Shown here one piece after another: positions 4,391-44,900 of a DNA stretch of 64,000 nt. The notes under the pieces were generated by a model. The model worked only from the letters and a program-made list of their open reading frames with translations. It was not told where the DNA came from and made no database searches. Source of the DNA: Pelomyxa schiedti (Eukaryota > Protista > Evosea). Position numbers and translations under genes: made by a program. Position 1 is the first letter of the stretch, and each line of letters begins with the position of its first letter. The stretch is from the NCBI GenBank assembly GCA_020536535.1, contig JAHLWZ010000854.1, positions 8,444-72,443 of the forward strand, written 5' to 3'.

Positions 4391-5297
4391 ATGGGTCGCA
4401 TCGTAGCCAAGCCAACAGCAGCAGCGGCGTCCAGCACCTCCACGCCCTCCTCGTCGTCCCCGCCGCCCCCGCCGTCAGCAACCGCAGCAACAGCCACAGC
4501 CAGCCTGCGAAGCCTAGCCAAGGCCACCCCCTCGCCGCCCCCGCAGCCAACGCCCACGCCAGGCTCCCCGACGCCACCGCCCCAGGCCGTGGTGGGGCCC
4601 CAGCACTGCCTGGTCGCGAACACGGGCAGCCAGCCCCGCAACGCGCTTGTGACGGGGTACCAGAACGACGGGGCCGGGGAGCTCGCCACCGCCATCGCGC
4701 ACACCGACCAGGGCGACGTGTTCGGCAAGGCGCAGAGGAGCGCGTGCTGGTTCCCGTACAATGGCGGCGAGCACACTACTTCGCGTTTCTCTTGGTATGC
4801 TTGTATTGGCTATTGGCCGTTGTGTTGCTGTTGTTGTTGTTGCTGTTGTTGTTGTTGCTGTTGTTGTATTGTATTGTATCATACATCTCCAATATTGATA
4901 TACCCCCCTCCCTTGCCTTGGTTATTTAAGGCCACTACTCCCACTCTAACAACCAACCGAACCCAACAATGCAATGCTGCTGTACACATACAATCAACCA
5001 AGACATAAATACTATACACAATAGCGAATATACGCGTTTCTCGCATTTGGCGCACAACTCACTCATCCCTGAACAAGGGTGTGTGGCTCTGCGTATAAGC
5101 TTGAAAGAGCTAGTGGGAGTGCACGGCCACCTCAGGGAACTGTATCACAAAATACTAATGGCCAGGTGATATTCGCCGCTGTGGCACACACGAGCCATGG
5201 TGATGTGCCTGCAGAGTACAGAAACGGCACATGCCTCTATCCCTATGGTGGTAGGGCTCTCGCGGCTACAGCTTTCTCATGGGTACTGTGCCTCTGA
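4391..5297 (+). CDS. Two-repeat DM9-like (putative lectin) protein with Pro/Ser-rich N-terminus; intron ~4795-5077
   Basis: Two homologous repeats, AIAHTDQGDVFGKAQRSACWFPYNGGEHTTSRFSW and AVAHTSHGDVPAEYRNGTCLYPYGGRALAATAFSW, join in frame across a GT-AG intron. They resemble the DM9 pattern GxxPGK...CYxPYGGxE. Confidence 0.65.
4819..4868 (+). repeat. (TTG/CTG)n microsatellite in the intron of the DM9-like gene
   Basis: Visible tandem gttgttgctgttgtt run. Confidence 0.9.
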
Positions 5298-5455
5298 TGG
5301 GGAATTCTGATTAATTTTGAAATTGTAAAGCAAAATATGAAAAATGAGAAAGCTAATAAACCAAAAAAAAACTTTCTTTTTTCACAAGGTGTTGTAGTGC
5401 AACAAGTAGTGTTGGTGGTATAGTTGTTGGGGTTGTTGTGGTTGAGTTGCGGTTG

Positions 5456-6535
5456 TTAGGAGCAGCACTTCTTTTTCTTGGTGTCAGTTTGGGAGTTTGT
5501 AAGTGTGAGGGCGGAAATTTTGTCTTGTCTGACTGGGGGTATTTTGGGTAGTCTCTTGGCTATTTAGTGTAAGGTGTCGGAAAGGCATTTTGGTTTAAGA
5601 TAAATAGAAAAAGTACGGTTCTGACCTATGGCAACAAACAGTTCATTGACATTGGCATTGCTTTTGGCGCTAGTCTGCATTGAGAAAGAATGTTAGACAG
5701 AGGAACAAATAAAGGTGTCCTACCTCCATAAATAAAATGCCATTTTCGTCGGCATATTGCTGGGCCACCTGTTTGAAGTTATTGAAACTAGAAAGTCGAC
5801 AAAGCTCTTACAGCGGTGTCAACTTTTCGTCTCGGGGCAAGGTCAGATTTATTGCCAGCCAAGCTTATTACAATATTTGGGCTGCCTTGGCGCTGTAGTT
5901 CTTGTACCCACAACTTGGCTTTGCCAAAAGATTCCTTCAATTGTATTCAGAAACGTAATGTGTGAAGTGTTTTGAGAAATACCGCGTTGGTGATATCACT
6001 ATTTTTTTCAACATTTTATTGGTGAGTTAAATGATAAGGTATAACTGAAGGCAATGCATACTAAACAACAATCGCCGCCTGTGCGCCACGGTAATACCTT
6101 ACATCCAGCTCAACAGAAAGATGATTTGTTGAAATACATACATTGGAGCAAGTGCATGGTATCTCTCCTGACCAGCCGTATCCTGCTTGGCCTTAGAGTG
6201 TACGGAAGCTATTTGTGGTGCTTACCCATATTTCAAATTTGACTGTAGTATCATTCACACAAACGGTTTGTGTTAAAAATGCAGCTGTGAAATACAAAGT
6301 CACCAAAAGACAGTAAAATAAGGGGACTCTTACCTCCAATCGTACTTTCTTGGTAATCCAGAAACTGACCTTTTACAAAACGTAACACCAAACTCTATGC
6401 GAGTACGTGAGTGTTGTTTCACGTGTGACTTCATTGTGGGAGAGGGAAAAAAGGTACCGATTTGCCCACGGCAGATTCGCCAAGCAGAACAAGTTTAAAC
6501 TGAAAAATGTTGTTTGCAACTGCTGCTTGTGCCAT
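5456..6535 (-). CDS. RAB5: Rab5-family small GTPase, multi-exon
   Basis: Spliced translation [46 protein letters not shown]...[29 protein letters not shown]...LAGNKSDL...TSAK, ending in the prenylation motif KKKKCCS*. Confidence 0.96.
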
Positions 6536-6891
6536 GGTCTGGTGTATTTGTTAAATTGTTTTCTTTCGGTGATGTGATGGGGTTTGGTTTTTGTTTTGCT
6601 GGTGTACCCGAGCGCGGCGCACACTTTTTTGTTTCTTTTTTCTTTCCGATTCTTGTGGATTCCGTTGGTGATCACAAGCCAACCAGATCCACACTCCGAT
6701 TCTGAATCATCTCCTCCAAGAAGCACCCTATGGAGAGGATTCACAACGCTGGAGATAGTGTCGAACAGTTGTTCCCAGGGGGAGGAGGGGATTTCCCGAT
6801 AAAGCTCGGTTTCCTTGTTGATTCCACATGGAAGATCACATCTTCTTCGAGGAACTGCCGGAATTTTCGAAACTGCGAAGAGAAAAAAAAG

Positions 6892-8675
6892 ATGCAGTCT
6901 GGCACGTCAACGTCGTTGCTGGCGGCAGTAGGTCTACTGTCGGTTGTGCTGTTGGCACGGAATTGTGGGTGCGTTGGTATTCCAGACTCTGATGGATTTC
7001 CTTCCTACGACGAACGAGTGCAACTGCAATTGGCAAACAGGGCACGCTGCGACCCTCAGGTTCTATTCCCATTTCTATTTCCTTTGGAAAATTTTTCATG
7101 ATTGGTAGTGGCCCAAATTAGCATTAACAAAGCTTTGTTGCCCATTTGACAGGTGGAAATGGAACAGTGTGGCAGTTCTTGTGCTGATGCTGCTTGTTAT
7201 ACACCAATCTTTCCACTCAAGTACAGTCACTCACTGGGACACGGAGCCAGGTTCCATGCTGCTCATATGGAAACAAACAACTACTTCTCACATCCTTCTG
7301 CTTGTACATTGGAGCCTGACTTACCTGATATATATCCTGGATCGTGTGTTGCAGAAAAATGTAAATCCTCCAATGCTGATATCCATCCTCCCACTCTCTT
7401 CCTTGAAGTTGCACTGATGCCGCTGCTTCGTGCAGTTGCGTTGGAGGCACTCTGGCTTGCAACCCAACTTGCACCGATACATGGGGAAGGATAGCGGTAG
7501 GTACAACGATTAATTCCTGATATCAACTTGGCCCTAAGATGTTCACACCCTCTGGTGGTTCTGGAGAAATCATTGTATCAATAGCTGGCCAGGTACCAAG
7601 AAATAATTTCTTTTCCAAAATTTACTAATAGTTGATGTTAAGTACGGGTTTTATCTGTGGCTATATGAGCCCACAGGTGACAGTACCTGCCAGTTTACTA
7701 TGCAGAATGGCCACAGGTGCGCCTTTGTATTAAAAGAAATCTTCCCACTGTTATAGATGGTTACTTCTGAAATCTGGTGACGGCGTGGGATTTGGTGTTT
7801 TTGGAAATGCTGTTGGCGATTTTGGTGCCTCTGATGAATCGGAACTTTCTTGGTGAGAAACCAAACCCCAAACTTTTACTTTCTAAAGGAAAAAATAAGG
7901 ATACCTTCCGGTACGCACTGGCCAAATGAAGATAATAGCTCGAAGTACTGTGGTGTTTCCTCTTAAAGAAACTTACATATTACAGTATTGAACTTTGGGC
8001 AAACTGGTATGATGCTGGGGGAAGTGAGCCTACTTTCTCGCAAGTAAACGTAGATGGAATATGCTACGATATGGAATTGCAACGTGGGGTACGCTCCAAT
8101 GGAGCTTACATGGCCATTGTACCTCTTGGAGGAGATGATGATTGCCATCGATATTTCTTCTTATTTAGTGATGGAACTAACCTCACATCACCGTATGCTT
8201 TAAAAAGTATTAATAAATACAAAAACCAAATAAAAATGTAAAAAAGCATTCCTTTTACAAGCAAAAAGGTACGTTGCACACCCAACAGAGGGATCACTCA
8301 CATTTGGCAATTGTGGTGACGACTATGAAAGTTCAAGACCAGACTTTGGTGAGAACTGTATGGCAGGTGAGAGTATTTCACTTTTTATCTAGATAGGATA
8401 TCTATATACCTTTATGTAAGATATGATTGATTGCGCCTTCACTCACAATCCCTGCAGAGCCAAATGGAGGTGGTGGTGGAGTGAACGTAGCTGCCGCAGT
8501 TGCAGTGCCAATAGTGCTTCTCGTTGTAATTCCTGCTGCAGTTGCTGGTGGATGGGTGGGATTCAGAAAATTGGTGGTGAAGAAGCCAATTATTCCTGAC
8601 GAGATATCAGTCTCCTCGTTCAAAGAGGGATCGAAGGAGGCTGCCACTGTTGTAAAAGAGAAATTACCTTTCTGA
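6892..8675 (+). CDS. Cys-rich CAP/SCP-domain type I membrane protein, multi-exon
   Basis: Signal peptide, then LQLANRARCDPQ, LKYSHSLGHGARFHAAHMETNNYFSH, GEII, FYLWLYE and NGHR (CAP motifs). C-terminal TM helix VAAAVAVPIVLLVVIPAAVAGGWVGF followed by RK. Confidence 0.75.
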
Positions 8676-8717
8676 AAAATTTGTTTGCCATTTTGCAGTG
8701 AGATTTTTTTTTTTTTT

Positions 8718-11054
8718 TTACAAGGCACTGCCCATCTCAGTCACATTGTCAAAGAAGAAAAAGCTGAATTCTGGTCGGTCAGAAGAGCGGTCAATGACGA
8801 GGAGCTGGCTTGTTGATGGAATCCACGACGTCAGCCTCACGTACTTGCCGGATGTCGGGAGTGAGTTTCTGTAAGTGTCATCATAAACACCAGTTGTGGT
8901 GTCAAACACCCCGTCGATCACCCTGCTGGCGTATGTGTTGCCAAAGTAGAACTTCCCACACACAACAAATGCAAAGCCAGTCTGTGTCTTGATTCGAGGG
9001 ACAGTCCACGTCTGCAAGATTGCGAGGGAGTCGGGGTCCACCCTTGTGATGTGTATGTTGCCGTTGTCTGGTGGTGCGTGGACCACATACAGCACACCCC
9101 CTGAATCAACATACCAGCAAATGTCCGTGGCTCCACCCCAGTCCCACGTTGATTTGCCAGTGTGGCCGGCGTTTGGGAGTGGTGCAGTTGCGACTGTTGA
9201 CCCGTCACTCACACGCACCTTGGTCATCGTGGCTTGGGTGTATGGGGTGCAGTACACGTGGCCGTTGTGCACGGCCTGGTATGTGCCGCCGGGGTAGTGG
9301 GGCACGTCCTTGAGTGTGAACTGCCTTGGGTTGGTGTTGCCGACGAAGCTGGCCATATTTTCGAACTCTGTCAGTTGTTGACGGTTGAGGGCGTCGTCCC
9401 AGTACACTTTTCCAGTTCCGTTGTCAACAAACAGCCTGTGAGCATGACGCGGTGCGATCGAGGGCACCATTGACCCCAGCTGTTTGAGTGCCTCCTTCAT
9501 TGCGGTTGCTGCTTTGGGAATAAGAGTTGATGTTGAGTTGCGAACAATGCGCCCAAGTGATGAGATTGTTCCACAAACGGCAGTTGAGTCACATTCAAGT
9601 CTCACCTGTCCGATTTTGAGTCATTTTACATTTTTGTGGAAACATATACCTTGAATTCACTCTCGGCACCTGAGTCGCAAAGGTTTTTGACACGAGAAGT
9701 GAGAGTGTCATGGACAGCCACAAGTTGGAGGTCGGAGAACTTCGTTGTTGCGAGTTGTGCGTATTCTTGTGCCTCTTGTGCAGCCTTCGTTTTGTTGTCG
9801 CATCCTTCGATGTGTTCTTGGAATGTCTTGCGGGATAAGTGAGTGAAGTTTGGGAGCAGAGGATAAAAACAGCCCACTTTTTTCGCGGTTTCAGTGATTG
9901 TCTTCAGCTCCGATAGCAGCTGTGCCTCCCTGGCATTGACAACAGCAACAATCTTGGCAAATTCAGTTCGTATTTCTGACTCCACTTGTTTTGAAACTTC
10001 ATCTGCGGTTTTTAAACACCCCTTTGTCGTTTGTTTAAAACGCCAATGATGGAAATGGAAGACACACAATTGCGGTGAGTTTCGAATGTGAAATCCTCTC
10101 CAGGTGCAATGACAACTTTGAACAGAGTGTGGCTACATTTTCCTTGAATTTGGAGCTCAGGTCAGAAGAAAACACGAAATCGTGGTTCTTGTGGTCAATC
10201 AATCTGATAATGGTGTTTTGATGTTTGTGTAACTGCATAAAGGGTGGTCTCAAGGAACACACGTGCAATCACGGCAGATCAATGACTTGTCAGTGTTGCA
10301 ATACAGTCGCAGTTCCTCATGTGGATGCTTGGAACAAAGTGACGGTTTGGGTGCAGTGGGTGTGACAGTTGTCTGTGCCCTGAGTTGATCCACAGTCACA
10401 ACCTGCATCCATGTTAACGAATTGGTACATAACCAGGTGGGGGCGGGAGACAGAAATAGACATTGTGAGAAGCAGTCCTCCACGCACGCGAGTGGTGAGC
10501 CTTGTCGTCGTCGCACAGGAATACGCTGCACGACGCGCACCACCACGGGGCGTCGTGCGACCTGCAGTCTCCGCACTCGCGCGGGGGCGCGGCGGCCGTG
10601 GTGCCTGGCGGCTGTGATGCGCCCCCAACAGCCGCAAGTGGAACCAGGGCTAACAGGCTGGTCTTCCATAAGTCCACAGGGAACCCGCCGCTGGGAATTG
10701 GTGCCTGTTTGGCGTTAGCACTCGTTTTTTTGCAACTGCAGCAGTGCACAGACGGACACCTGGGAGTGACACACAGGGCACGTCATGGTTGATGATGAGG
10801 GCGACGAAGCAGTGGAAGACGTGGAATTAGGCGTAGAGGTTCCTTGTGAACATCGAGTGATGCACTCGAAACACATACTGTGTAAACACGGCAAGAGCCT
10901 GGGGAAGAAAACAAAAAAAAAAAAAAAAAAAGGGCTTAGAACCCCTTCCTTCCCGAGTACGAGATCAATGGTCTCTGCTGACTAACCTTGGATCACGGAG
11001 GAACAAGGAGCAGCGCGGACAAGTTACTTGCGCTATCACTTCCTTCTTGTCCAT
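8718..11054 (-). CDS. TRIM-like RING-Bbox-Bbox-coiled-coil protein with C-terminal olfactomedin domain, copy 1
   Basis: RING: MDKKEVIAQVTCPRC..LLPCLHSMCFEC..CPVC. B-box1: CGDC..WWCASCSVFLC..HHSRAWRTASH. B-box2: CSKHPHEELRLYCNTDKSLICRDC..DHKNH. Then coiled coil and a last exon with LPNAG..WGGATDI..VD..LYVVHA..GNIHITRVDP..L..QTW..FAFVVCG..FDTTTG (OLF pattern). Confidence 0.88.
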
Positions 11055-11363
11055 TTGTTCGGCGTTGACTAGGTCTACGAATGAAAAACCAAGTTGAAGG
11101 CCATAGTGCCTCCCTTACCGGTGATTTATTGGTTCCTCCACAACCTCTTTGTGCGCTCTGCACCCTTTTTTTTTGGACACCCACCTCAATCACTGGTGCC
11201 AGCGAGGATGTCATATTACATTCGCAGAAAACCCTTCCTGAGACTCAAAAAGGACTTGACAGATTCGATCCGTTCCCTGCAAACCCAAAATCAAGCGAAG
11301 TGAGGCGTCTTCAATCGAAGTGCGCACCGGGAGCGACGAACGTCGGAGGGGAGTAAGAGTGGG

Positions 11364-14262
11364 ATGAAGTTCGGCAAGCAACTCAAATTCTTGGCGAAGG
11401 AGCAGTGGAAACAGTACTACATCGACTTCTCCGCGTTGAAACAGGTTTCGTCTGCATGGGTCGCCACCAAGGTGCTAACTGTAACCACAGATCTTGAAAG
11501 ATTTGAAAAAGACCGCCGAGAAAGAAAACAGGTTCTTCTATGCCCCCCATTTTTTTTGTCAGTGAGTGCGATACCTGCGGCGTAGTAATTTCCCTTATGG
11601 CGTTTTCAACACCATCAGATGCACAACTGTTGTTAAAGAGAAGGTAGTGGAGGGTTCTGAGGAAGGACCAAAATCGGTGGAAGAGGTGAAAGCCAACATT
11701 ACACCGCAAGAAGAAGAACACTTCTTGTGAGTCCTATGTTTGTATCACGCCATTTCTGCTCTCTTACGCTCCTAGGAACAATTTTGTTGAACAAATACAA
11801 AACATCGAGTCTTTTTTCAGGTTTCAACCCAGAAAACAAATAATATGAACACCACCAACTTAAAAACCAAAAGGCAGAAATTCGATACAATCGTAGAGAT
11901 GTTCAAGCAAATAGAGGGGGATGGGCAAGGAGTCCCAGGAAATCTGGCTTTATTTAAAAAGAGAGTACATGATATGCTCATCCTTGTTGAGGATTTGATT
12001 GACTTTTGTCATCTAAATTCCGTTGGTTGCACAAAAATTCTCAAGAAGGTGGGTTCTAGTTTCTCTCAAGGTTGTTCTTTCTCAAATTACATCTAGTTCA
12101 CCCGGCATACGACGTTCTCTCAGCGTGATTCATACGACGACCTTGTGAAATCCCAAACATTTGTGGCTAATGTTGTACTATGTTGGGAATTCTCCTTACT
12201 GATATGCAAGCAGATTGCTGTACTAGAAAAAGTTCGCACATCTGCTAAGAGGATTTATGTGACAGCAATACATAAGGCAACACAGGAGTCCAACGAAAAA
12301 ATTCTACAAGAACTCGAGCAATCTGTGCAAGCAGCCCATTCGTGGAAAGTAGCTTCTCCCTCACTGCGATTGTTCTCATAAATTCGTAATTAGCTGAATA
12401 CTATTCTATTCCAATTCGATGAACACGTGAATAAGGCACAACTTGTATACAAGGTGTATAATATAAAGCCACTTCCTATAGCTGTTGCCCTTATTATAGG
12501 GCTCATCCTCTATTTTATTCCAATATTTGCTGCTGACAAACAACCAGAGCAACGCTGCTTTGCCTTGCGTACTAATCGTTTCTCTTGAGAGCCTTGGTCT
12601 CACCAATTTTTTAGTTGTGGTCTCCATTATTCTGTGGGTCAGTGAGTGCTGGCCACTCTTCCTCACTGCCATTTTTATTCCTTTCCTCGTTACTATCTCA
12701 TACTGTGTCTACAACGATAACAAAACGGTGATGAATCCGACACAAGCAGCTGGTTTTGCCTTGAATGCAATGTGGTCCTCCATTATCTTTCTAATGCTCG
12801 GCGGTTTTTCCATTGCTGGGGGTTTAAAAAAGTGTCTCTCTTATCTTCCTCCATCTTTTTTTGACTCCTTTTGCTAGATATGGAATTGATCAAAGAATAG
12901 CTTTTTATGTACTTAAGCAAAGACTATTTGCAACTCCAATGTATGACCTCTCTCTTTTTGAATACTGACTTCTCCAAAGGCGGTTTGTATTTGGATTGGA
13001 GGTACTTGCTCTGTTTTTGTCTATGTGGATTTCGAATGTTGCTGGGCCAGTCATATGCATGACAGGTATGCTTCATATCACTCTCACAAGCTTGTCTAAT
13101 TCTTCTAAATAATAGTCAGTCTCCCTGTCATTCGTGATCTTCCTTCCAATTCAAGATTTATCAAATTAATCCTTCTGTGCATTGCTGCTGCCGGAAACGC
13201 CGGTGGTATGACAACTCCAATGTAAATTTCGTTTCTTTTCCTTTTGCACCCTGTTGATTTTTGTTTCCAAACAGTTCTTCGCCACAAAATGCTGTAGCTA
13301 TCCAGGTTCCTTCTTACTTCCAAAACCAGAGGAATTTAAAACAAAAACAGACCGTTAACGGATTGAACCCCCCTCAAGATATTAACTTTGCTCTCTTCTT
13401 TATTATCAGTCTCCCAACTGCTGTAATTATGACTATTTGTGGCCATTTCTTGATAATGTTTATGTAGTAGCTCTACTTCGTCGTATTTCGCCTCGCCTAA
13501 CAATTTGATGACTTAAGGTACAAGCCAGATATTAAAGAGCTTCCTCAAATTCACACTGATGTCAGTGAGCCCATCCCCATCAAGGGTTATCTAGTTTTAT
13601 TGGCAGGAATCACGTCAATCATTCTGTGGTTTTGCAGTCAGTGGTTAAATCCATATGTTGGAAACATTGGAATACTTAGCATCATCCCGATTTTGTTGTT
13701 CTTTGGGACCGGACTGCTTGGGAAAGAAGAATTTGACAATTTACCATGGAATTTGATGATTCTACTTGCTGGTGGTTCAGTGTTGGGAAAAGCTGTACAG
13801 AAGTCAGCATTACTTACACTAATTTCCGATTGGTTGCTGGACAAGGTATCTCACAAAAAAAAAAAAAACCTTTTGCTCCCTATCCACTCATTTGCCTCAC
13901 AGATCGACACCAATAATGTCTATGTAATGCTTGTGATATTCAACATAATCATGATGATAGTGGGCGGGTTTGTCTCCCACACAGTGTCAGCCCTCATTCT
14001 GCTGCCCCTGTTTGCCCAGGTTGGTGACACCTTCGGGCACGCCAAGGCCCTCGTCATGTGCGGGGTCTGCATCTGCTGCGGAAGCATGCCGCTTCCCATA
14101 TCCTCGTTCCCAAACCTCAACTCCATCAGCTTGCAGGACGAGCACGGCGACCCCTATCTCACCACGCTGGACTTCATCAAAGTCGGCGTTCCTCTCACCC
14201 TCGTCGCCTTTGTGTGCAGTATCTCCATCAACTATGGACTGTGCTTGGCCTTCAACTACTGA
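11364..14262 (+). CDS. SPX-domain Pho87/Pho90/Pho91-like phosphate transporter (SLC13/DASS family), multi-exon
   Basis: SPX start MKFGKQLK..EQWKQYYIDFSALK, plus LWVSECWPLFLTA, IFLMLGGFSIA, SMWISNVAGP, NAGGMTTP..SSPQN and LPISSFPNLNSI. Confidence 0.92.
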
Positions 14263-14420
14263 TTCAATCACACCCATTCGCATCATGCATCATGCATCAC
14301 ACAGCACAAAACCCAAACACAAACAAAGCACAAGCCATGCAATCAACTCATCAGTCACACAGAATCACCCCCCATTCACCGATTTCACCAACAACACCGA
14401 AACTCATCAAAAGGGAAAAA

Positions 14421-16711
14421 ATGAAACGGCGAGTTGTGTATTGGGCTGTGGTTTTAGCTCTTGTTGTTTGTAGTTGTGGGTTGGCTGATAGCTCCTCTGT
14501 GTTTGGTTATATTTCATTGAGCAGTGACTGGGCTACTCAACACCCATCAGCTTCACTACAAGTATTTCTCCTATGGTCCCTATTTCTCAAAACAAATTTG
14601 GTGTCTCTGCAACCACGAAGGTTTCTGTGTTTGTACTAAATACCACGGATTCCGGAAATGCCGACCCTTTGCATGACGAAGCTGTATATTACACTCCACC
14701 TTTTGCAAAGTACAGCACCGTGAAGGTGTCACAGTGCACTTATGCAAGTGGTGATTCTGCATCTGTGCAGTGCTATTATACAATTGACCTTCCGGATTCC
14801 GCTGCCAATTACAGTGTCGTGGCATTTGCAGACGAACTTGCAGATGGAGTTATGCACACAGAGAAGCTGGTCCCAGTAGGGTGGTGTGCAACAGAACCTT
14901 CTGGACCTTATAAGATTTTGACTGTTGGAAGCAAAAAGTATCGTTAATTCTCTTATACTATTCTACTAAACTCCCCTTCTCTTCTAGAGTTGATTTCGAG
15001 TGCAATATTCCACTGTATTCCATTTCTGCGTGGCCTTCTGAAACTACCAGGCATGGCAATGGTGTGCTGTATTGGCAATCTGGGTTTCACGTACTTCACA
15101 CGTGGGGAACTGCAGAGGTGTGGATTGCAGGTACAGCATTCCAAGGCTTATATTCCACAGGAGCGTGGTGAAGCTTACGGATTCTTATTGGCTCGTTATA
15201 TTGTAGAATTTTTCCAGTTCTACTTTTTGGAGAGAAACGTGGATGGCGTGTCCAACTATAACAACATCGTTCTCCCATATCTTGAGTCATACATGCAAGT
15301 AGGAACCATTGCCTTCCTTGCCCTATTTTTATTTTTCGGTAGGTACCTCAGGTAATGCAAGAGATAATGGACGGCATTATCAGCGGAATGTCTGCTTCTG
15401 GGGAAGATATTAGCGTCGTATCACTCAATAGGAACTTTTCCACAATTGTACCTTAACACGAAATGAGAATCCCCTTGTAATATCCGCAAGGACATTTTAG
15501 CTATAAATGCCTACCTTGAAGCATCTGAAGTGGTTTCCGATCCTTGTGACAGCTTGGCAGAACATCCACCCCGAAAAATAACTCCAGCTTGTACTCAAGC
15601 GACCCTGTGGGGTCCCAGAACAACTTCTGGAGAAATTATTCATGGACGAAGTACAACTCCCTCGCCTTACCGTTCTTGTACTTCTAAACATTGAAGACAT
15701 GGATGGGGAACTGGATATTCGCAGAGTCACAATAAATCATTTGTTGATTCATGCCACAGAACCAAGGTATCAGCAACACTGAAAAACTGCATGTGACCAC
15801 TTCTTCAGTAGTGGCTATCGTACAGTTTCAGTTATGTGGCCAGGTTATGTTGGTACACTATCAGGAGTCTCCGAGTCTGGGATATCCATCATGGAAAATG
15901 CCGCCCGGTTTTCGGCCAATTATACATGTATAAAGGGTTGGCCTGCTGCATGGATGATCCAAGATGCACTAGAAACCTTCAATCCCTCAATCACCTCCAC
16001 TGAAGCCCTGGAATGGATGGAGAGGTTAAAAGAATATGAAATTACGACTTCCTCATTTATTCTCCAGTAATTACATGGATGCCGCGGGTGGAATTTCTCC
16101 AGGTGGAAGTATCCTTGTTATTGCCACTCCATATTCTGGAACGGAGGTTTTTTAAATTTATTCATCCTTCTAAGTTGAAGAATCAAAAGCACGCGCCATC
16201 CTATGTTCTTGAAGCAGATAGATATGGACAAGTGATGCGCACTCCAGGTCAAGTCAGTCCCTGGGATACGAATGCAATCACTGCCTCCAATCACTTTTTA
16301 GTGTATGGGGCAAACCAGCAACTCAATAAGAATTTTGGTCAGAGTGCCTCATTCTCGTCACTTTGGAGATACGAAGCCTCCAAGGTACCACGCAATCCAT
16401 ACCTATTTTTATCTCGATAACCGGAAACAATAGAATTTGATATCCGCATGGTCCCGCACAGGCCAGCAAGCAGATGTGGCCTCAATGGCCCGGCTTTTGC
16501 AGACAGTAGCAGAAGGAGAAACAGAGCATTCCATTATCTGGGAACCCTCAACCAGTAAGTTCCAAACCCACAAGCCCATCAAACAACACTCACGCTCGAA
16601 TTCCAAGGACAACTGAGTATCGGAATTGCCGCAATGGAACCGGTTATGTGGGACGCACCATTCACAGACTGGACCACATTCGACTTTGACTCCTTTTTCA
16701 CCCAACAGTGA
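14421..16711 (+). CDS. Secreted Ntn-hydrolase, peptidase C45/acid ceramidase-like, with an extra N-terminal domain
   Basis: Signal peptide MKRRVVYWAVVLALVVC; ERGEAYGFLL; nucleophile context ACTQATLWGPRTTSGEIIHGR..MD; WPGYVGTLSGVSESG; ITASNHF. Confidence 0.75.
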
Positions 16712-16826
16712 TCACAGTCATCACGCCAATCTGCCGCTGAACATTGTTCTTTCTTTTATCTCGCTCGGAGAAAAGTGCACCCTAATTTGATTTCGGCACA
16801 ACCCGCTGAAGCGCCGTGACGGAACG

Positions 16827-19800
16827 ATGCAGGGAGCCGAGGTCGTAACAAATAATGAGGGGGGGAGCAGGGTAATGATGCCAAACGATTGGCACCACGC
16901 TGCGCCCTTATTTTGTCTTTGTTTAAAGGCATTTTTTTTTATTTTTTGAATAACTCTGTTACAGGAGGGAGGGTGTGCTGCACAGGCGAGCGGATCTAAG
17001 ACTTGGACACAAGCATCAAAGCAAAGACATAATGACAATGTAGGTGTCAGTGGAACGGTGTTTTTTTTTTTTAACCGCTTTTTTTTCCCCTTGAAGCAGG
17101 GAAGTGCTCTTCCACCGCACTTACTGTGCCGACAAAACAAGTGTGTTTCAGTGCCAACACAATCTCACTAATGATGCTAGAGTTGCTGTTGAGTTGCACT
17201 CAAACAATGCGCCTGACTCAAATGGCATGAGTGGCGGCATTTCTGAAGCGGTTCCACTTACTCTTGCAACATTTCCAATCCCACGTACTTCCCTTGAAGA
17301 AGAGGAGGCACCCCCGCCTCCCCCACCACCTCGGCATCACAGAAAAGGACATAGAAGTGTCAAAACACATCAGGCACCGCCCCAGGACTTACAGAATAGC
17401 CCTCCCGTTGTGGAAACAACTTCCCAAGAAAACGGTGTGAATACTCAGCCATACAGCAATGTCACTATATCACCCAAAATGGAAGAGCTGTATGGTATAC
17501 TAGTAAGCGGTGACGCAAACAGCCAACTTGAAGTGTGAATTACTTTTAGCTGCAGTATTATGTGGCTTATTTAGATTCAGGTCTTACGATCCTTCATTGA
17601 TTGTGAAGAGAATAAAGAATTGTCGGCAATATTTATCATCAAAGGAATTCAACCACTACTGGCTATTATGACATGTGGACAGGTGCGTCCATCAATAATG
17701 GAAAACATCCTCACTTTTAGCAGCCCATCCCTCAGGAACTTGCACTCACAATTCTTTCTCAATTGATTATGGAGCCTGAAAATTCCCGTTTAATCATTTT
17801 GAGTCCTGTGATTGACACCCTTTGTGCATCTCTATGTATGTTAATGCATTATTCCTGTTTCTTAGTCACAAATAAAAAGCAATGACTGCCCACCAAAGCC
17901 TTATTGAACGAAATTTGCAGTTGCTTGTCAAACTCTCTGAAATGTGGGATGAAAGCCATGCTGAGGCTTGGTGTTCAGGACTCCCGACTCTCATTACATC
18001 CATGCGGAATGCGCCTGTCATGCACCCTGATACTCTCAAACTATCTCTATCACTATTCCTGAGTTTGTAACTCTTTCCTATCCTATGTTTCAACCCAACC
18101 ACAGGCCTTCTGCAACCAAGTCATTCTGCTATACATAAAAATTTTTGTATTGAAAGTGGGGTACCCGTGTTTTTGGATCTTCTCAAGCTTGACCCCAACA
18201 CAATAACAAGTGCCTTGAGAATACTCACCAGCCTCACCAAAGTTGAGGAATTTACTCTCAAGCCTTTGATATGTGAAACTCTTATTGTGTCAGGTATACT
18301 TTAAGTTTTCTTGTGCCGCCTACCCAACCTTCTAAAGGCGTCCTTGGAACGATTTCGGATGTCATTGTCAAACATAACCAAGAAGAAGCAGTTACAGAAA
18401 TGGTACTCGAACTGCTCATGCAAATTGTGAATTTAGGGTTGGTTTTTTTTCTACAAGAATTGTCAAATAACTGGACCAAAGTGGGCAAATTGATAATGAA
18501 ATGCTTGCAATTAATTTGGTTTCAATCCCCTGGTCAAAGTTACCTGCTCAACAAATCAACCTTGCACAACAAATTTACACCGATATTGCAAGCAATCCAA
18601 GTGTAACTTCGATTTACCCCATTTTGTTTTGTTCAAGTATTATCAGATGTTGAAGTCCATTAGCTTTAGTGGCATTATACCAGTGATATGTCAACTGCCA
18701 AGTACAGTGGCAAAAAAAGATCATGGTAGTAACCTACCACTAAGTGTTCTGCTTCTTACAATTTCACAAGAATTTATGGCGTCATGGATTAAACTAATGA
18801 CTACAATCGCCAGAGATGAACAACTGCGATTTGAAATACGAATAAACTCTATAGAACCACAAATCAAGGAAATTGATTCATGCTGTCCACCACATCTTGC
18901 TGATGACCTAAAACAGTATACTGACAACATGTCTTGTGTAATTCAAATCTACAAGGTGCAAATCTGCCATATTCTTGCCTTTGCGGAAAGAACTGGTAGA
19001 ATCTCTCACTAAAGATTACGTGGAACTTGGGGATTCTAATGATCAAATTATCGACCTGGTGATGGAAGACCAGCTCCACCCACAGCCCTCAGATGGGACA
19101 ACAATATGGAAGTCATTTCAAACACCTACAGTTCCACATAATCCAACTGAAGCCCGAATAAGGAGTATTTCCAAGTCAAGGGTGCGTTTTTCTGTACTTG
19201 CTGAAATTTTATTTTGTCCTGCAGGCAAGTCTCATGGCAGAGGCGAGCACTCAGAACAATAAGCGTAAGTGTGTCATTTCTGAGTTATGGACTACAGAAA
19301 AGCAATATATCAAGTCACTGGAAACATGTCTCCTTTGTTTTTATGAGCCCCTTAAACGCGGAGGTTGTGCCTTGCCCCACTTAATATGTCATTAAATTCA
19401 CCACGACCATAGATTATGGGTGTTCCCCAGATGACCTACTTCATCTGTTTATTACACTACCAGCTCTGGCAGAGGAAGGAAAGCTCTTTCTTGATTCTCT
19501 TTCAGAGAGAATGGAAACGTATGACAACGCAACACTCGTTGGGGATGTATTTATTAGATATTTTTCTAAATCTCCGTTAGCAAGACTATATTCGGTATGA
19601 ATTTCCTTCCTCGACCCCTCTGAACTTCTCAAGGAATACATTGTTTGGCATGACAAAGCAACAGCTGTATTCCACAATCTGCAAAAAGTGGGTTTAACCT
19701 TGCAAATGAGCGGATTAGTAATCTTGTACCAAAAAAGTTGCCCGCCTTCACTGCTTGGATGCGTCAGATGGGAACCAGTGAAGCTACCAACCATATGATA

Positions 19801-40074: not shown

Positions 40075-40715
40075 ACCTCTAAATCTGTGGTGGTCGTGCC
40101 ACTGTGCAGAGGAGGTTGGGTACTCCGCATTTTTTTCGTCTCTCAGAGACCAAGGCACAATTTCCCCTGTTATCAGGGAGATGAAAAAATGAGGAGTACC
40201 CAACCTCCCAGACGAGAGGCTGAACAACACGGAGCTTTGGGCCTGCGCCGCCTCCCTGAAATGCCCCAGTCCCGAGAGAATGGGGGCAGAGAACTTCGCC
40301 GCAGGCCCTTTCAGAAGGTGATGGATTATTCCCATCTGAGAGGGACACACCCCTATGACGGAGCATGTTCCCTCCCAGGAGCAGGCAAACTCCCAAGGCT
40401 CCCCCCTGGGAGTTGCCTGCGAAAACAGATTTGGAGGGAGTTAACCCAGGGCGCCCCCCTGGGGCACTCCCTCCTGACATAACTTAGAGTCTGAACAGCA
40501 GAGGCTCCCCCTCTGTGTCATGACTCGAAACGAAAGTGGACCAGGCGCCCCCTGGCCACAAAATCCCTGTCTCACACACGTTGGTTTTTCTTGCCTGAGC
40601 TGCCCACAAGGAGCAACCCAGAGAAAACCTGTGGACAGGGAGCATTGCACGATGGATAGGTTGATAGATTGGATAACCGTGACTGCATTTGAGCTCGGTC
40701 ACAGAAGGTCAAGTA
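40075..40715. ncRNA. Candidate structured non-coding RNA (multi-hairpin), family not recognised
   Basis: Dense inverted repeats: 40111-40208, 40239-40308, 40381-40420, 40433-40474, 40487-40526, 40536-40559 and 40564-40641. They lie in an 860-bp gap with no convincing CDS. Confidence 0.55.
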
Positions 40716-40834
40716 CTCCTCGAGGAAAAGAGCTTTCAGGGCAGGCCAATAAGAGAACAGTTTTTTTTTGGTACGGGATTGTGGGAATAAAAACATTTCG
40801 TTTTCTGTTCTCCTTTTCCGTCTTGTATCAAATA

Positions 40835-41875
40835 ATGAAGACAATCACCGTGAAGCCTTTCCGGGTGCAGTTTGCTGTTAGTAGGGAGCCTGTTGTTCTT
40901 TGTCCCTTCGAAGTGCCGCCATCGTCAGTTGCCTTGACCGACTCATGGTCTTCGCTTCCCATGGTTGCAGCCCCCACTGTAGCCTCGCCATCGGCAGTGC
41001 CCCTCTTCGACCTCTCATCCCTCCCTGGCCCACTGATTTCGGCCGTCATCGACCAGCTGGCCTCCTCCCCGCGCGACCTCCTCGCCCTGGGCCGCACCTG
41101 CCGCCCGCTGGCCGGCCGCACCCGCTCGCAGGACCTCTGGCGCCGCGTCTTCTCGCAGGCCCAGAGCGCCCGCGCCTTCTGGCACGAGGAGCAGCGGCGC
41201 CCGGCGGAGCCCTGGTTCTGCTTCGTGCTGCGCATGGCCCACGCCCCGCGCCACTCGCGCCTGCTGCTCGCCGCCCTCTGCATCTGCCCCGGGGGCAGCG
41301 GCGTCGCGACCCACCCGCTGGCGGCGAAGGGGTGGCCCGAGGGGCTGCTGGAGAGGCTGCCGGGGTTTTACTTGTCTGTGCAGCATCCGGTTTGGCCCGA
41401 TTCTGGGGAGCCCGGAGAGATTACGGGGTTTGAGGATTTGTACAGGACGGCGTATAAGTAAGGCTTGTTTGTGTGCCACACATCTGTCATCACTGTTTTG
41501 GGTGGACTTGTTTAAAGCTTGTGTCTATGGGGAATTGAATGGCCAACTGACTGAAAAAACCACCAGTTGTGTGCTTCATAAAAAGCGCATAGAGTTTGAT
41601 TGTATTCTGGAATACATTCTATTTCACGCTGCTGAACGTACTACCTGTGACATCATGGCCAATTCGCCTGCCAAGGTAAGAACCTTACCCACAAATTATT
41701 GACTAACTTTTTGTTACGCACTAAGGAAGAAACCATACAGAAATACCGTACTTTCAGTACAATGTTGGCTGATGTATGTGCATATCGGAACCGTGTGGAG
41801 AATTGTGAGGCAATACAGAATATCGCTGATAGGGTTTTATCCCGAGCCATGGAAAAACACCACCTCACGTTTTAG
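40835..41875 (+). CDS. F-box protein fused to a Cullin-3-like N-terminal repeat; introns 41458-41566 and 41676-41725
   Basis: F-box LSSLPGPLISAVIDQL..DLLALGRTCRPL..LWRRV. The spliced C-terminus is FEDLYRTAYNCVLHKK...MLADVCAYRNRV. Confidence 0.75.
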
Positions 41876-41912
41876 TTGTATAAGAAGAAGGAATAAAATT
41901 ATATTTGTTCAA

Positions 41913-44900
41913 CTATTCTTTCTTGGACATGTAGGTTTTGCACACATTCATCAGTGAACCTTTTCGAGCTGTCATCATTCCACGGAACTCTGGAGACTGT
42001 ATGAGCGCGGTCCGCTCGGAATTTATCACTGAAGTGAGGGTTATTCCAGAATGACAAGAATCTTTGAACACACTTTTCAATAGAAGCCATTCGCGTGTCT
42101 GCTCATTGTTTGGGAAACTGACAGGTTCGGGCATGAAGGGAGGATAGGGAGACACTCCAGCTTTGTTGGCTACTATAATATTATACCCTGTTGTGGCGTT
42201 TGTAGTGCTGTCGACAATTGCTTCAACAAGGAAGAAGCCATCTGGAATTTATGTTAAAAGGAATCATACTTGACTGTAACCAATACGTACGAAGGAAGTG
42301 CGAAGTGAGCAGTTTTGGAGTAAATAAGTCCTTGGGGTTTGTGGGGTCACGCTCTTTAAAAATTACAGAAACCTTGGAATGGTAAAATTAGAAAAAAATT
42401 TTAAATATTTAATTGATATTAATTTATATGAAATTAATAAAATAACAAAAGCGCACCACATCATTCCCGATATGCCGTTTTCTTTCCACACGTTGAAGAT
42501 CATCAGGTTGGAAAGGTAAGTATGTGCAAACCTTGAAATGATGTTTTGAATTTGGGTAAAAAATAGAAAACGTACATGATACATTATCTCGTAATCTCTG
42601 AATGACGTATAAACAGAAAATTTCCCTGTGGAACCGGCTGTTTATTCACCAATGAGATGCGTGAGATCCGGAGACTGAGGGAAAATACTTTTTACATCAA
42701 GACCAGCTCGGTACTTGGTCCAGCCTTCTAATGTAACTTTAGTCCCAAGGAAATCGAGAAACTCCTGATAACGTGGGGATGCATCAGTTTCCACTTAAAG
42801 TGCATCAGATGAAGGCATAAGGAAATGAGATACTACAATTACTAAATATGTCGTTTTCATCAATTTGGTTTGGCTTCACCCACAGAACGCCAATCTTGTA
42901 CGCACGCACACAGCTTCTTTCTTCAAAATTGAGTAAATCTTTGGATAATTCTGTTTGCGCCTTGACACGAACTAACTTGGTGTCCCTGGTAAAAATAAGT
43001 TTAAATAACACTGGGGAGGCCATACTTCAATCGAAGAATGGATGAGCCAACAAACCGGGCAGACTCGGTTGAGGGTATCAAAGCTCTGTCTACTCCCTAT
43101 CACTAGCTTTAATTATTCTTATCACAAGAAAAAAGATTACCTTTTTCGAAATAATCAGCACTCTCCGAGGTAAAACCTCTTTGCTTTCTACTTGTTGAAT
43201 TGCAGCAATAATGGGTGATCCTTCTGATATACAACAGAATATGTCATGGGCTGCAGTGTTTTAGTCCTTGACGCAAACAGAGGAAAAGCATACGCTGCCC
43301 GTAAAAGAATTCCTTATAAAATAAGAAGTACCGATGAGGATCGATGAAGCCAAAAGGTTCTATTTCATCCCGCTTTGTGGATGTCACACTTCTGGCATCA
43401 TACTCAACTGAAAACGCACCTCCTGCTGGTGTGGTACATGCCACATCAATTGCAGGTACACCGTACTTTTCTATGTTCGGTTCTGTCCCCTGTGATTTGA
43501 TAAATGCTTGGGCTATCAAGTCAATGGAAGGGAACGGACTGTCCAAGTTTCATGTGGGTAGGGAGAGCTTGTCCAGTGATCAACAAAGCCAGATCCCCAA
43601 GCTAAGTTTTCCATAGATCTAATTGCTGTCACCAAAGCAGCACGATCATGAATTATTCTGAATTGGTTCTCAGAAAATAGTCTAGCAAAAGATAGGTACT
43701 TGCTAGGGAGAGCTGGCACAGTTTCACCAGAGCCAGTTGATGTCTGAAAAAGAGCAAGGTTTTTGCGGAGTTTTGTTGACATGGCCCCAACAGGAATTTC
43801 TGGTGAAGACGGGATGTTAGTGGATGAGAAGGGAGCATGGCAAAAATTACCAGATATAATATTAGAAATATTTTTGAGTTTAAACATCGGCTCAGCTGGT
43901 TTAGCTGGCTGTGGTACTGGCATTGGTTGGTCACGCTGTGGAATGTTAACGAGCGCAAATCGTGGGCATTCTTACAAGGGTGGCACCAGTTCCCCATGAT
44001 TCCATGGCAGCACCCAAATGCCCTGTGTGCTTGAATGTAATGGGGTCGGAGATAGCAAAGTCCTAAGTGGACTAAGGGAAAAGGCAGCAGAATGAATACA
44101 TACATCTTTTTTAGGCTTTCTTTTTGGTGCGTCTTTATGGGTTGTCACTGGGTGGGGATGTGATGTAGGTGCTGGTGTTGGTGTTGATGTTGATGTTGAT
44201 GAAAATGTTGATGTCGATGTCGATGTCGATGTAGCGGCTGGTGTTTGTGTTGCTGTCGGTGACACCGGTGGTGCTGGTGTTGGCGTTGGTGATGGCGTTA
44301 CAACTGATATTGATGGTGATTGCGACGGTGATGACGAAAGTGTGGGCGATGAGGTTACTGTTATTGTAGGTGTGGATAATGGTTGGCTCTGCGCATTTGT
44401 AGTGGTCCCCGAAGATGGAGGAGCGGGAGCAGCAGGAAGTGGCTTTCCAGGTACGAGATGAATGTGCATTGGCTTCTGAGCTGTTGGAGGTAGAGGAGGA
44501 AGTTGTTTGGAGGGGTGACTGATCCCAGATGTGCTCTGTGTAGGGGGAGTTGCATTTTCTGCTCCTTCTTCACCTTTAAACATTCCGATAAATTGACGTG
44601 ACTGTCCAGTTTTCCTTCCAATGGAATTGAACCAATTTGGGGGGCGCTGCGGAGCAGATTGATTTGTAGATTGCCAAGAGTGACTTTGTGCAACATCCAA
44701 GTAGGCAATGGATTGAATCTGAGACTGTGTTGGAGTAGCTTCTTGGGCTGATTGACCCAAATTTTGGAGTTTTAATTCTTCTTCCTTTGAGGAAACTTGA
44801 GATTCATCGGTGGGCTGCATAACGCCTTCATCATTTACAATAGACGCACTCTGGTCAACTTCAACTTCACTTTCACTGTCACTATCAGCATCAAACTTCC

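Follow-up and report, generated by a model that had tools for sequence, protein, structure and literature searches.

Can a receptor of one cullin-RING ligase carry the adaptor-docking helix of another? The question is raised by Pelo_12711, a spliced three-exon F-box gene of 293 amino acids in the anaerobic amoeba Pelomyxa schiedti. An earlier note, made from the letters of the DNA, had described this locus as an F-box fused to a mimic of the Cullin-3 (Cul3) N-terminus. The gene lies in the 64,000-nt stretch of DNA that was analysed (the window; contig C854:8444-72443), which belongs to an assembly of 52.37 Mb in 5337 contigs. The single-cell genome of this species contains 19,876 predicted proteins, with 7.4 introns per gene, and was annotated using Augustus, PASA, and EVM together with transcript data (PMC8887013). 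The window was translated and searched exon by exon, and full-length searches were performed with the public protein (P0001). The features of the locus, in window coordinates, are as follows.

40835 to 41457, forward strand: exon 1 of Pelo_12711, codons 1-207 and 2 nt of codon 208
41015 to 41152, forward strand: F-box-like domain, residues 61-106 (Pfam PF12937)
41153 to 41425, forward strand: linker, residues 107-197, with no family match and low fold confidence
41426 to 41457, forward strand: first part of the Cul3 helix-2-like motif (G198-Y207 and 2 nt of N208), which continues in exon 2
41458 to 41566, forward strand: intron 1 (109 nt, GTAAGG...CCAG, phase 2), placed from the motif read-through and the public annotation
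41567 to 41675, forward strand: exon 2, with the last nucleotide of codon N208, the remainder of the helix-2 motif (CVLHK, up to 41582), and a predicted helix (residues 215-239)
41676 to 41725, forward strand: intron 2 (50 nt, GTAAGA...CTAAG, phase 0), spliced out in RNA
41726 to 41875, forward strand: exon 3, with predicted helices at residues 244-264 and 271-288 and the stop at 41873-41875

Removal of the two introns keeps the reading frame through to the stop, as the earlier note had read it. The exons sum to 882 nt (623 + 109 + 150), which gives 293 codons and a TAG stop, and the protein database holds the same three-exon model, at 100% identity, as "hypothetical protein Pelo_12711 [Pelomyxa schiedti]". 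Of the two GT-AG junctions, that of intron 2 was borne out by RNA: a contig from a single-cell RNA run (X1) joins 41592-41672 to 41723-41792, skipping 50 nt that have GT..AG ends with the cut shifted by +3. Across the gene, the RNA depth reaches only about 4 (0-4), and the contigs of this run cover neither exon 1 nor intron 1. The position of intron 1 is instead suggested by the Cul3-like motif, which reads in frame across the junction (FEDLYRTAY / N / CVLHK), and by the public annotation. Alternative AG acceptors within intron 1 (first exon bases 41463 and 41518) each lead to a stop within about 25 codons or fewer, according to a frame-reading script. The early stop foreseen for the acceptor at 41517 was thus found, and the choice between first exon bases 41518 and 41567 is not decided by the RNA contigs.

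The surroundings of the gene have features of their own. Just upstream, at 40500-40721, RNA contigs reach a word depth of about 5,000-18,000, compared with 0-4 on the gene (reads were placed from 40500). This depth supports high expression of the segment, in which neither an Rfam family nor a tRNA was found. The stretch at about 40646-40729 has two further copies in the genome, with 84-86% identity, and the DNA assembly graphs fork at 40668-40700. On the other side, the 3′ end of a convergent neighbour gene lies about 25-50 nt from the Pelo_12711 stop, and an RNA contig of this neighbour is spliced at a 45-nt intron on the minus strand (42029-42073, CT..AC on the forward strand). The neighbouring ORFs, including the ORF pieces of the convergent gene, matched no Pfam family.

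The F-box that had been proposed was confirmed, by a thin margin. Residues 61-106 match PF12937 with 24.4 bits in the whole protein and 25.1 bits in exon 1, compared to a cut-off of 24.3 bits (E-values of 1.5e-5 to 2.4e-5, profile positions 2-45 of 47), and the expected landmarks, an LP motif, a DLLxLxxxC(R)xL pattern, and DLW, are readable in the sequence. The F-box gave no match in a single-sequence phmmer search of the PDB. In the linker that follows (residues 107-197), no Pfam family was detected, and no confident helix was predicted before residue 199. The genome contains at least 148 F-box-like loci (150 scored among 405 first-look candidates), at least five Skp1 loci, at least 12 BTB loci, and several cullins, including a true Cul3; the partners that an SCF receptor directed at BTB proteins would need are therefore present. 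The F-box repertoire is very large for a 52-Mb genome, and the Pelomyxa Skp1 genes are split by introns.

The resemblance to Cul3 is concentrated in a short motif at the start of the C-terminal domain. Cul3 meets BTB domains at a primary interface made of helices 2 and 5 from its first repeat, and its Lys68 forms a hydrogen bond to the 3-box (PMC3597819). Of the peptide residues, Phe54, Tyr58, and Tyr62 bury the largest surface, the double mutation Y58A/Y62A abolishes binding, and Glu56 and Asn60 are exposed to solvent (PMC4388676). The true Cul3 of Pelomyxa, which served as a reference, is encoded on contig C497 (L010:641-1200); an exon of this gene gave 71 bits with human Cul3, compared to 24 bits with Cul4A. 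The segment FEDLYRTAYNCVLHK of Pelo_12711, in the region of residues 198-213, is identical to helix 2 of the Pelomyxa Cul3 at 12 of 15 positions, reading FEDLYRTAYN and then CVLHK across the exon junction. Phe199, Tyr203, and Tyr207 correspond to Phe54, Tyr58, and Tyr62 of Cul3, and with Glu200, Arg204, and Lys213 (Glu55, Arg59, and Lys68) the contacts to BTB domains are kept. The three substitutions relative to the Pelomyxa Cul3 are E56D, N60T, and M64C. The first two fall at the positions reported as solvent-exposed (PMC4388676).

Several searches indicated that this match exceeds chance. The 14 best PDB matches to residues 185-293 were all Cul3 N-terminal domains (NTDs), with E-values of about 0.03 and noise beginning at 0.09. 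No cullin other than Cul3 appeared in this search up to an E-value of 10, so that the similarity is specific to Cul3. A purpose-built profile was based on A1, an alignment of short Cul3 fragments gathered from the protein database. When residues 185-293 were aligned by hhalign to the 20-21 fragments of A1, 20 columns, corresponding to helix 2, were matched with a probability of 92% and a P-value of 5.7e-7; after multiplication by the proteome size of 19,876 (PMC8887013), this P-value becomes about 0.01. Residues 195-216 scored 17.9 bits with the A1 profile, a score equalled by none of 1000 shuffles. The helix-2 match claimed by the earlier note was thereby upheld. Judged from these scores, the resemblance is real and significant, and covers only about 16-20 residues; in a scan of many genomes, chance can also produce a match of 30 bits to one well-known motif.

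The rest of the C-terminal domain gave a less uniform picture. The Pfam Cullin model (PF00888) matched residues 185-293 with 13.8 bits, far from its cut-off of 33.2 (E = 0.024, model positions 20-109 of 620), and found no match when helix 2 or the remaining domain was scanned alone. With the A1 profile, residues 214-293 scored 0.2 bits, which 287 of 1000 shuffles equalled, and residues 240-293 scored 1.1 bits, equalled by 143 of 1000. HMMER places MLADVCAYRNRV, which lies in this last stretch, in register with the Cul3 helix-5 motif MIRDILMYMDRV; because shuffled sequences score as well, the helix-5 match that had been claimed does not exceed chance level in the profile comparison. Helix 1 and the N-terminal extension of Cul3 are absent, with all alignments beginning at residue 197-198. 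Full cullins have three repeats, followed by a C-terminal cullin-homology domain in which the Rbx1 site and the neddylated lysine are located, a layout that Pelo_12711 does not share. In agreement with the earlier note, no Rbx1-binding or neddylation region was found in the protein, which ends at residue 293, and no cullin-like exon was found elsewhere on the contig.

Structural predictions for this domain lean towards a cullin to differing degrees. AlphaFold2 (AF2) modelling of residues 190-293 alone reached a pLDDT of 77.8 and predicted four helices (199-211, 215-239, 244-264, and 271-288), the first of which would coincide with helix 2 of Cul3, residues 54-66 (PMC4388676). The AF2 model of the whole protein was too poor for use (pLDDT 37). 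In a comparison of ESM features, the nearest neighbours of residues 190-293 were "Cullin alpha solenoid" clusters (0.84). The same cullin clusters remained nearest after helix 2 had been removed (residues 214-293, 0.88-0.89, which lies below the tool's mark of 0.9 and possibly includes outside context). That the first ESM match should fall on the cullin family would rarely be expected by chance. A shape search of the ESM Atlas returned a cullin cluster at the top (TM-score by query 0.66, 90 residues, rmsd 3.2) and a second cullin cluster at 0.56. When VIA was applied to the Foldseek candidates, Cul3 took the top row (Z 8.0, rmsd 3.5, 91 residues, Cul3 35-158), where unrelated folds tie with it and the matched range may not follow the register of the sequence match. 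In a structure search independent of Foldseek, several helical proteins with no relation to cullins ranked ahead of the best cullin, which was Cul2 (Z 7.0, rank 19). Helical bundles commonly reach Z-scores of about 8, and the Z-scores against solved structures do not discriminate. The Foldseek results themselves were set aside: both models placed Cul3 on top, with E-values of 0.1-0.75 and an rmsd of 6-8 Å, and the Foldseek score also uses residues.

The idea that the domain folds as cullin repeat 1 thus fared unevenly: it gained from the ESM features, the shape search, and the top row in VIA, and lost from the H3-H5 profile scores, which are at shuffle level, and from the ties with unrelated folds. 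The predicted fold is compatible with a cullin repeat and is no proof of one. The segment of residues 198-293 probably descends from the N-terminus of Cul3. The architecture that had been read from the DNA, an F-box followed by a piece resembling the Cul3 N-terminus with no catalytic end, seen only after splicing, was recovered, its firm sequence support coming from helix 2. A Cul3 remnant in a genuine, curious gene is moderately supported, and its function is offered as a proposal only.

What might such a protein do? The simplest reading, which we put forward tentatively and as quite possible, is that Pelo_12711 is an SCF receptor whose substrate-binding domain is a much-diverged partial Cul3 N-terminus and whose targets are BTB proteins. 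According to this proposal, the C-terminal domain would be a diverged remnant of a partial Cul3 N-terminus, co-opted as the substrate-binding domain. The F-box would dock on Skp1-Cul1, and the Cul3-type helix would occupy the cleft of the BTB domain normally used by Cul3. The SCF might then ubiquitylate the BTB proteins, or these might at least be withheld from Cul3, and competition with Cul3 would be a second possible effect. That the protein acts as a natural Cul3 mimic, an F-box protein that seizes BTB adaptors at the cullin-docking cleft and hands them to SCF, is somewhat unlikely, and the "cross-wiring adaptor" of the earlier note, with its capture of BTB proteins, is pure inference.

Studies of Cul3 give some indication of the binding strength to be expected. 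Peptides of Cul3 residues 49-68 alone bind the BTB domains of KCTD11 and KCTD5 at 0.1-0.6 µM (PMC4388676), and the N-terminal extension of Cul3 increases the affinity for KLHL11 by 30-fold (20 nM, compared to 0.65 µM; PMC3597819). By analogy, it would be reasonable for the region of residues 190-293 to dock into BTB clefts, and since helix 1 and the extension are missing, the affinity would be expected to be modest. Two paralogous intronless reading frames in the genome are RhoBTB-like (L021:223-1992 on contig C1006 and L022:130-1995 on contig C965). Both have a Rho GTPase part, a first BTB domain that a U-box-like insert seems to interrupt, and a second BTB domain with a C-terminal helical region. 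The second BTB and C-terminal region of the former (L021:1477-1992) was the one BTB region found to be both free of interruptions and long enough, and the homologue search for its alignment was empty. Its predicted complex with residues 190-293 gave an ipSAE of 0.00, which speaks neither for nor against binding.

The closest competitor of this proposal is an ordinary, lineage-specific F-box receptor, whose C-terminal helices bind a target other than a BTB protein, and whose likeness to helix 2 is a relic or a coincidence. The large number of F-box-like loci, at least 148, marks the type of fast-turnover family that yields orphan C-terminal domains, and such a receptor would account well for helices H3-H5 that are not Cul3-like by profile, for generic fold matches, and for the lack of helix 1 and of the N-terminal extension. 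It accounts less well for a motif that retains every known BTB-contact residue (F54, E55, Y58, R59, Y62, and K68) and that is substituted mostly at exposed positions (PMC4388676), or for the three softer methods (ESM features, shape search, and VIA) that point the remaining domain to a cullin. On balance, an ordinary receptor is possible, if doubtful.

How the two parts came together bears on another explanation, in which Pelo_12711 would be a young chimera that serves no selected function: a GC-rich F-box exon joined to part of a Cul3 duplicate, an AT-rich piece in decay, with a low level of transcription. The base composition breaks sharply along the gene: the GC content is 67% in exon 1 (70-82% at its centre), 42% in exon 2, and 43% in exon 3, or, by domain, 65-82% in the F-box and linker and 34-45% in the Cul3-like part with both introns. 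The decrease in GC sets in shortly before the motif, in keeping with a composite origin. An artefact of assembly or amplification at the GC break was considered and rejected. DNA contigs from three runs span 40671-42300, two of which depart from the window by 11 differences; two haplotypes, assembled independently, therefore show an identical structure over the whole gene. The second haplotype has eight coding differences, four synonymous and four non-synonymous (F9S, P29A, S51W, and S155G), a number that is too small for a test; all eight lie outside the F-box and residues 198-293.

Relatives that might date the fusion were sought at several levels. The exon 1 protein search found nothing beyond Pelo_12711 itself, and a phmmer search of residues 185-293 against 1.84 billion representative proteins gave no genuine relative besides itself. 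Two proteins that scored with the 109-residue query (P0002 and P0003, E-values of 8e-25 and 6e-5) are tandem-repeat proteins and were rejected as artefacts, because their scores are sums of 5-15 weak repeat matches. Within the genome, further decoy copies were sought in all six frames with the Cul3 profile, which matched only the true Cul3, and a whole-protein search for a second copy of the gene returned the gene itself and one marginal F-box-like locus. As the gene is an orphan of a single species, conservation lends no support to a function, and no test of selection follows from it.

The comparison with the presumed parent gene speaks to the age of any duplication. Both Pelo_12711 and the Pelomyxa Cul3 have a phase-2 intron inside helix 2, the two positions being 12 nt apart, and their second introns are at unrelated places. 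In the motif, the nucleotide sequences, as read side by side, are only about two-thirds identical. The differing introns and the low nucleotide identity imply that any duplication is old. A recent DNA duplication of the Cul3 gene was rejected: the intron positions differ, the third-codon positions have diverged, and tblastn matches only the two halves of the motif. In the Pelomyxa Cul3 itself (L010:641-1200), the phase-2 intron follows FEELYR in helix 2, and there is a phase-0 intron after MYM. At these two places, many Cul3 fragments of other organisms in A1 begin or turn to junk, which suggests that the Cul3 intron positions are widely shared.

The young chimera would thus draw on the GC break (67% compared with 42-43%), on the orphan status of the gene, on its RNA depth of about 4, and on allelic differences in the N-terminal part that are half non-synonymous. 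Against it, the reading frame is intact over two introns, the F-box and residues 198-293 are free of allelic change, and the introns are placed differently from those of the parent Cul3. The divergence is also uneven, with helix 2 at 80% identity and the rest of the domain at chance level, a pattern that is not expected from neutral decay and that fits better with selection on helix 2. We therefore regard a functionless young chimera as unlikely.

The last explanation starts from the adaptor side of SCF. Skp1 has a BTB fold, and helices H2 and H5 of Cul1 bind Skp1 and the F-box in an equivalent geometry. An SCF inhibitor that caps itself, with its cullin-like helices folded onto its own Skp1/F-box at the site of Cul1 H2/H5 so that the Skp1-bound complex could not join Cul1, would find a counterpart in that geometry and in a weak, sub-threshold match to the Skp1_POZ profile (residues 245-287, E-values of 0.02-0.25), and is very improbable given that the motif is of the Cul3 type, with Cul3 alone among cullins in the PDB search, and that cullin NTDs are adaptor-specific, as in KLHL11, which binds Cul3 and neither Cul1 nor Cul5 (PMC3597819). 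The analogy between Skp1/Cul1 and BTB/Cul3 is discussed in the same study (PMC3597819).

Should the proposed SCF receptor for BTB proteins prove true, Pelo_12711 would place the adaptor-docking helix of one cullin on the receptor of another, a built-in cross-regulator by which one cullin-RING family could regulate the adaptors available to another, or capture that other family's substrates. Cullin-RING ligases are usually viewed as separate systems, defined by the fit between adaptor and cullin N-terminus. The protein would also be a genetically encoded, ready-made BTB binder; synthetic Cul3 helix-2 peptides have already been explored as inhibitors. If, on the other hand, the resemblance has no function, the gene would be a clean case of an orphan F-box receptor arising from joined, unrelated pieces.

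Among known systems, the Cul3 NTD, including the truncated "dominant-negative" forms of Cul3, is the nearest in sequence. It shares with Pelo_12711 the helix 2 with F54, E55, Y58, R59, Y62, and K68; the dominant-negative fragments likewise have no Rbx1/neddylation part; and the predicted helical fold of Pelo_12711 is compatible with a cullin repeat. The Cul3 NTD, however, has about 380 residues, compared to about 96 in Pelo_12711, which is fused to an F-box, has neither helix 1 nor the extension, has H3-H5 that are not recognisably Cul3 by sequence, and matches Pfam Cullin far below the cut-off. From the peptides of Cul3 residues 49-68 it is known that helix 2 on its own can bind BTB domains with a sub-micromolar Kd, by means of F54, Y58, and Y62 (PMC4388676), and Pelo_12711 has all three. 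These peptides are synthetic and human, whereas Pelo_12711 carries the helix within a natural protein, where it may be exposed. The nearest ESM clusters consist of short "Cullin alpha-solenoid" proteins of 69-137 amino acids from the ESM Atlas, mostly from plants, which are N-terminal cullin pieces with no catalytic end. Unlike Pelo_12711, they match Pfam Cullin and have no F-box, and they may be gene fragments. A literature search for cullin mimics and BTB decoys found no F-box receptor of this kind. In function, the closest parallels are FBXL17 and FBXO22, which grip BTB domains through a leucine-rich repeat (LRR) domain and C-terminal helix or through a fold of their own, and are not known to do so through a cullin-like helix. 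Both are SCF receptors that recognise BTB domains (PMC11185555; bioRxiv 10.1101/2024.06.03.596960), the same role as that proposed for Pelo_12711, and have no sequence relation to it. F-box receptors for BTB proteins are thus already known, and a recognition module of the Cul3 type on one of them would, if true, be new.
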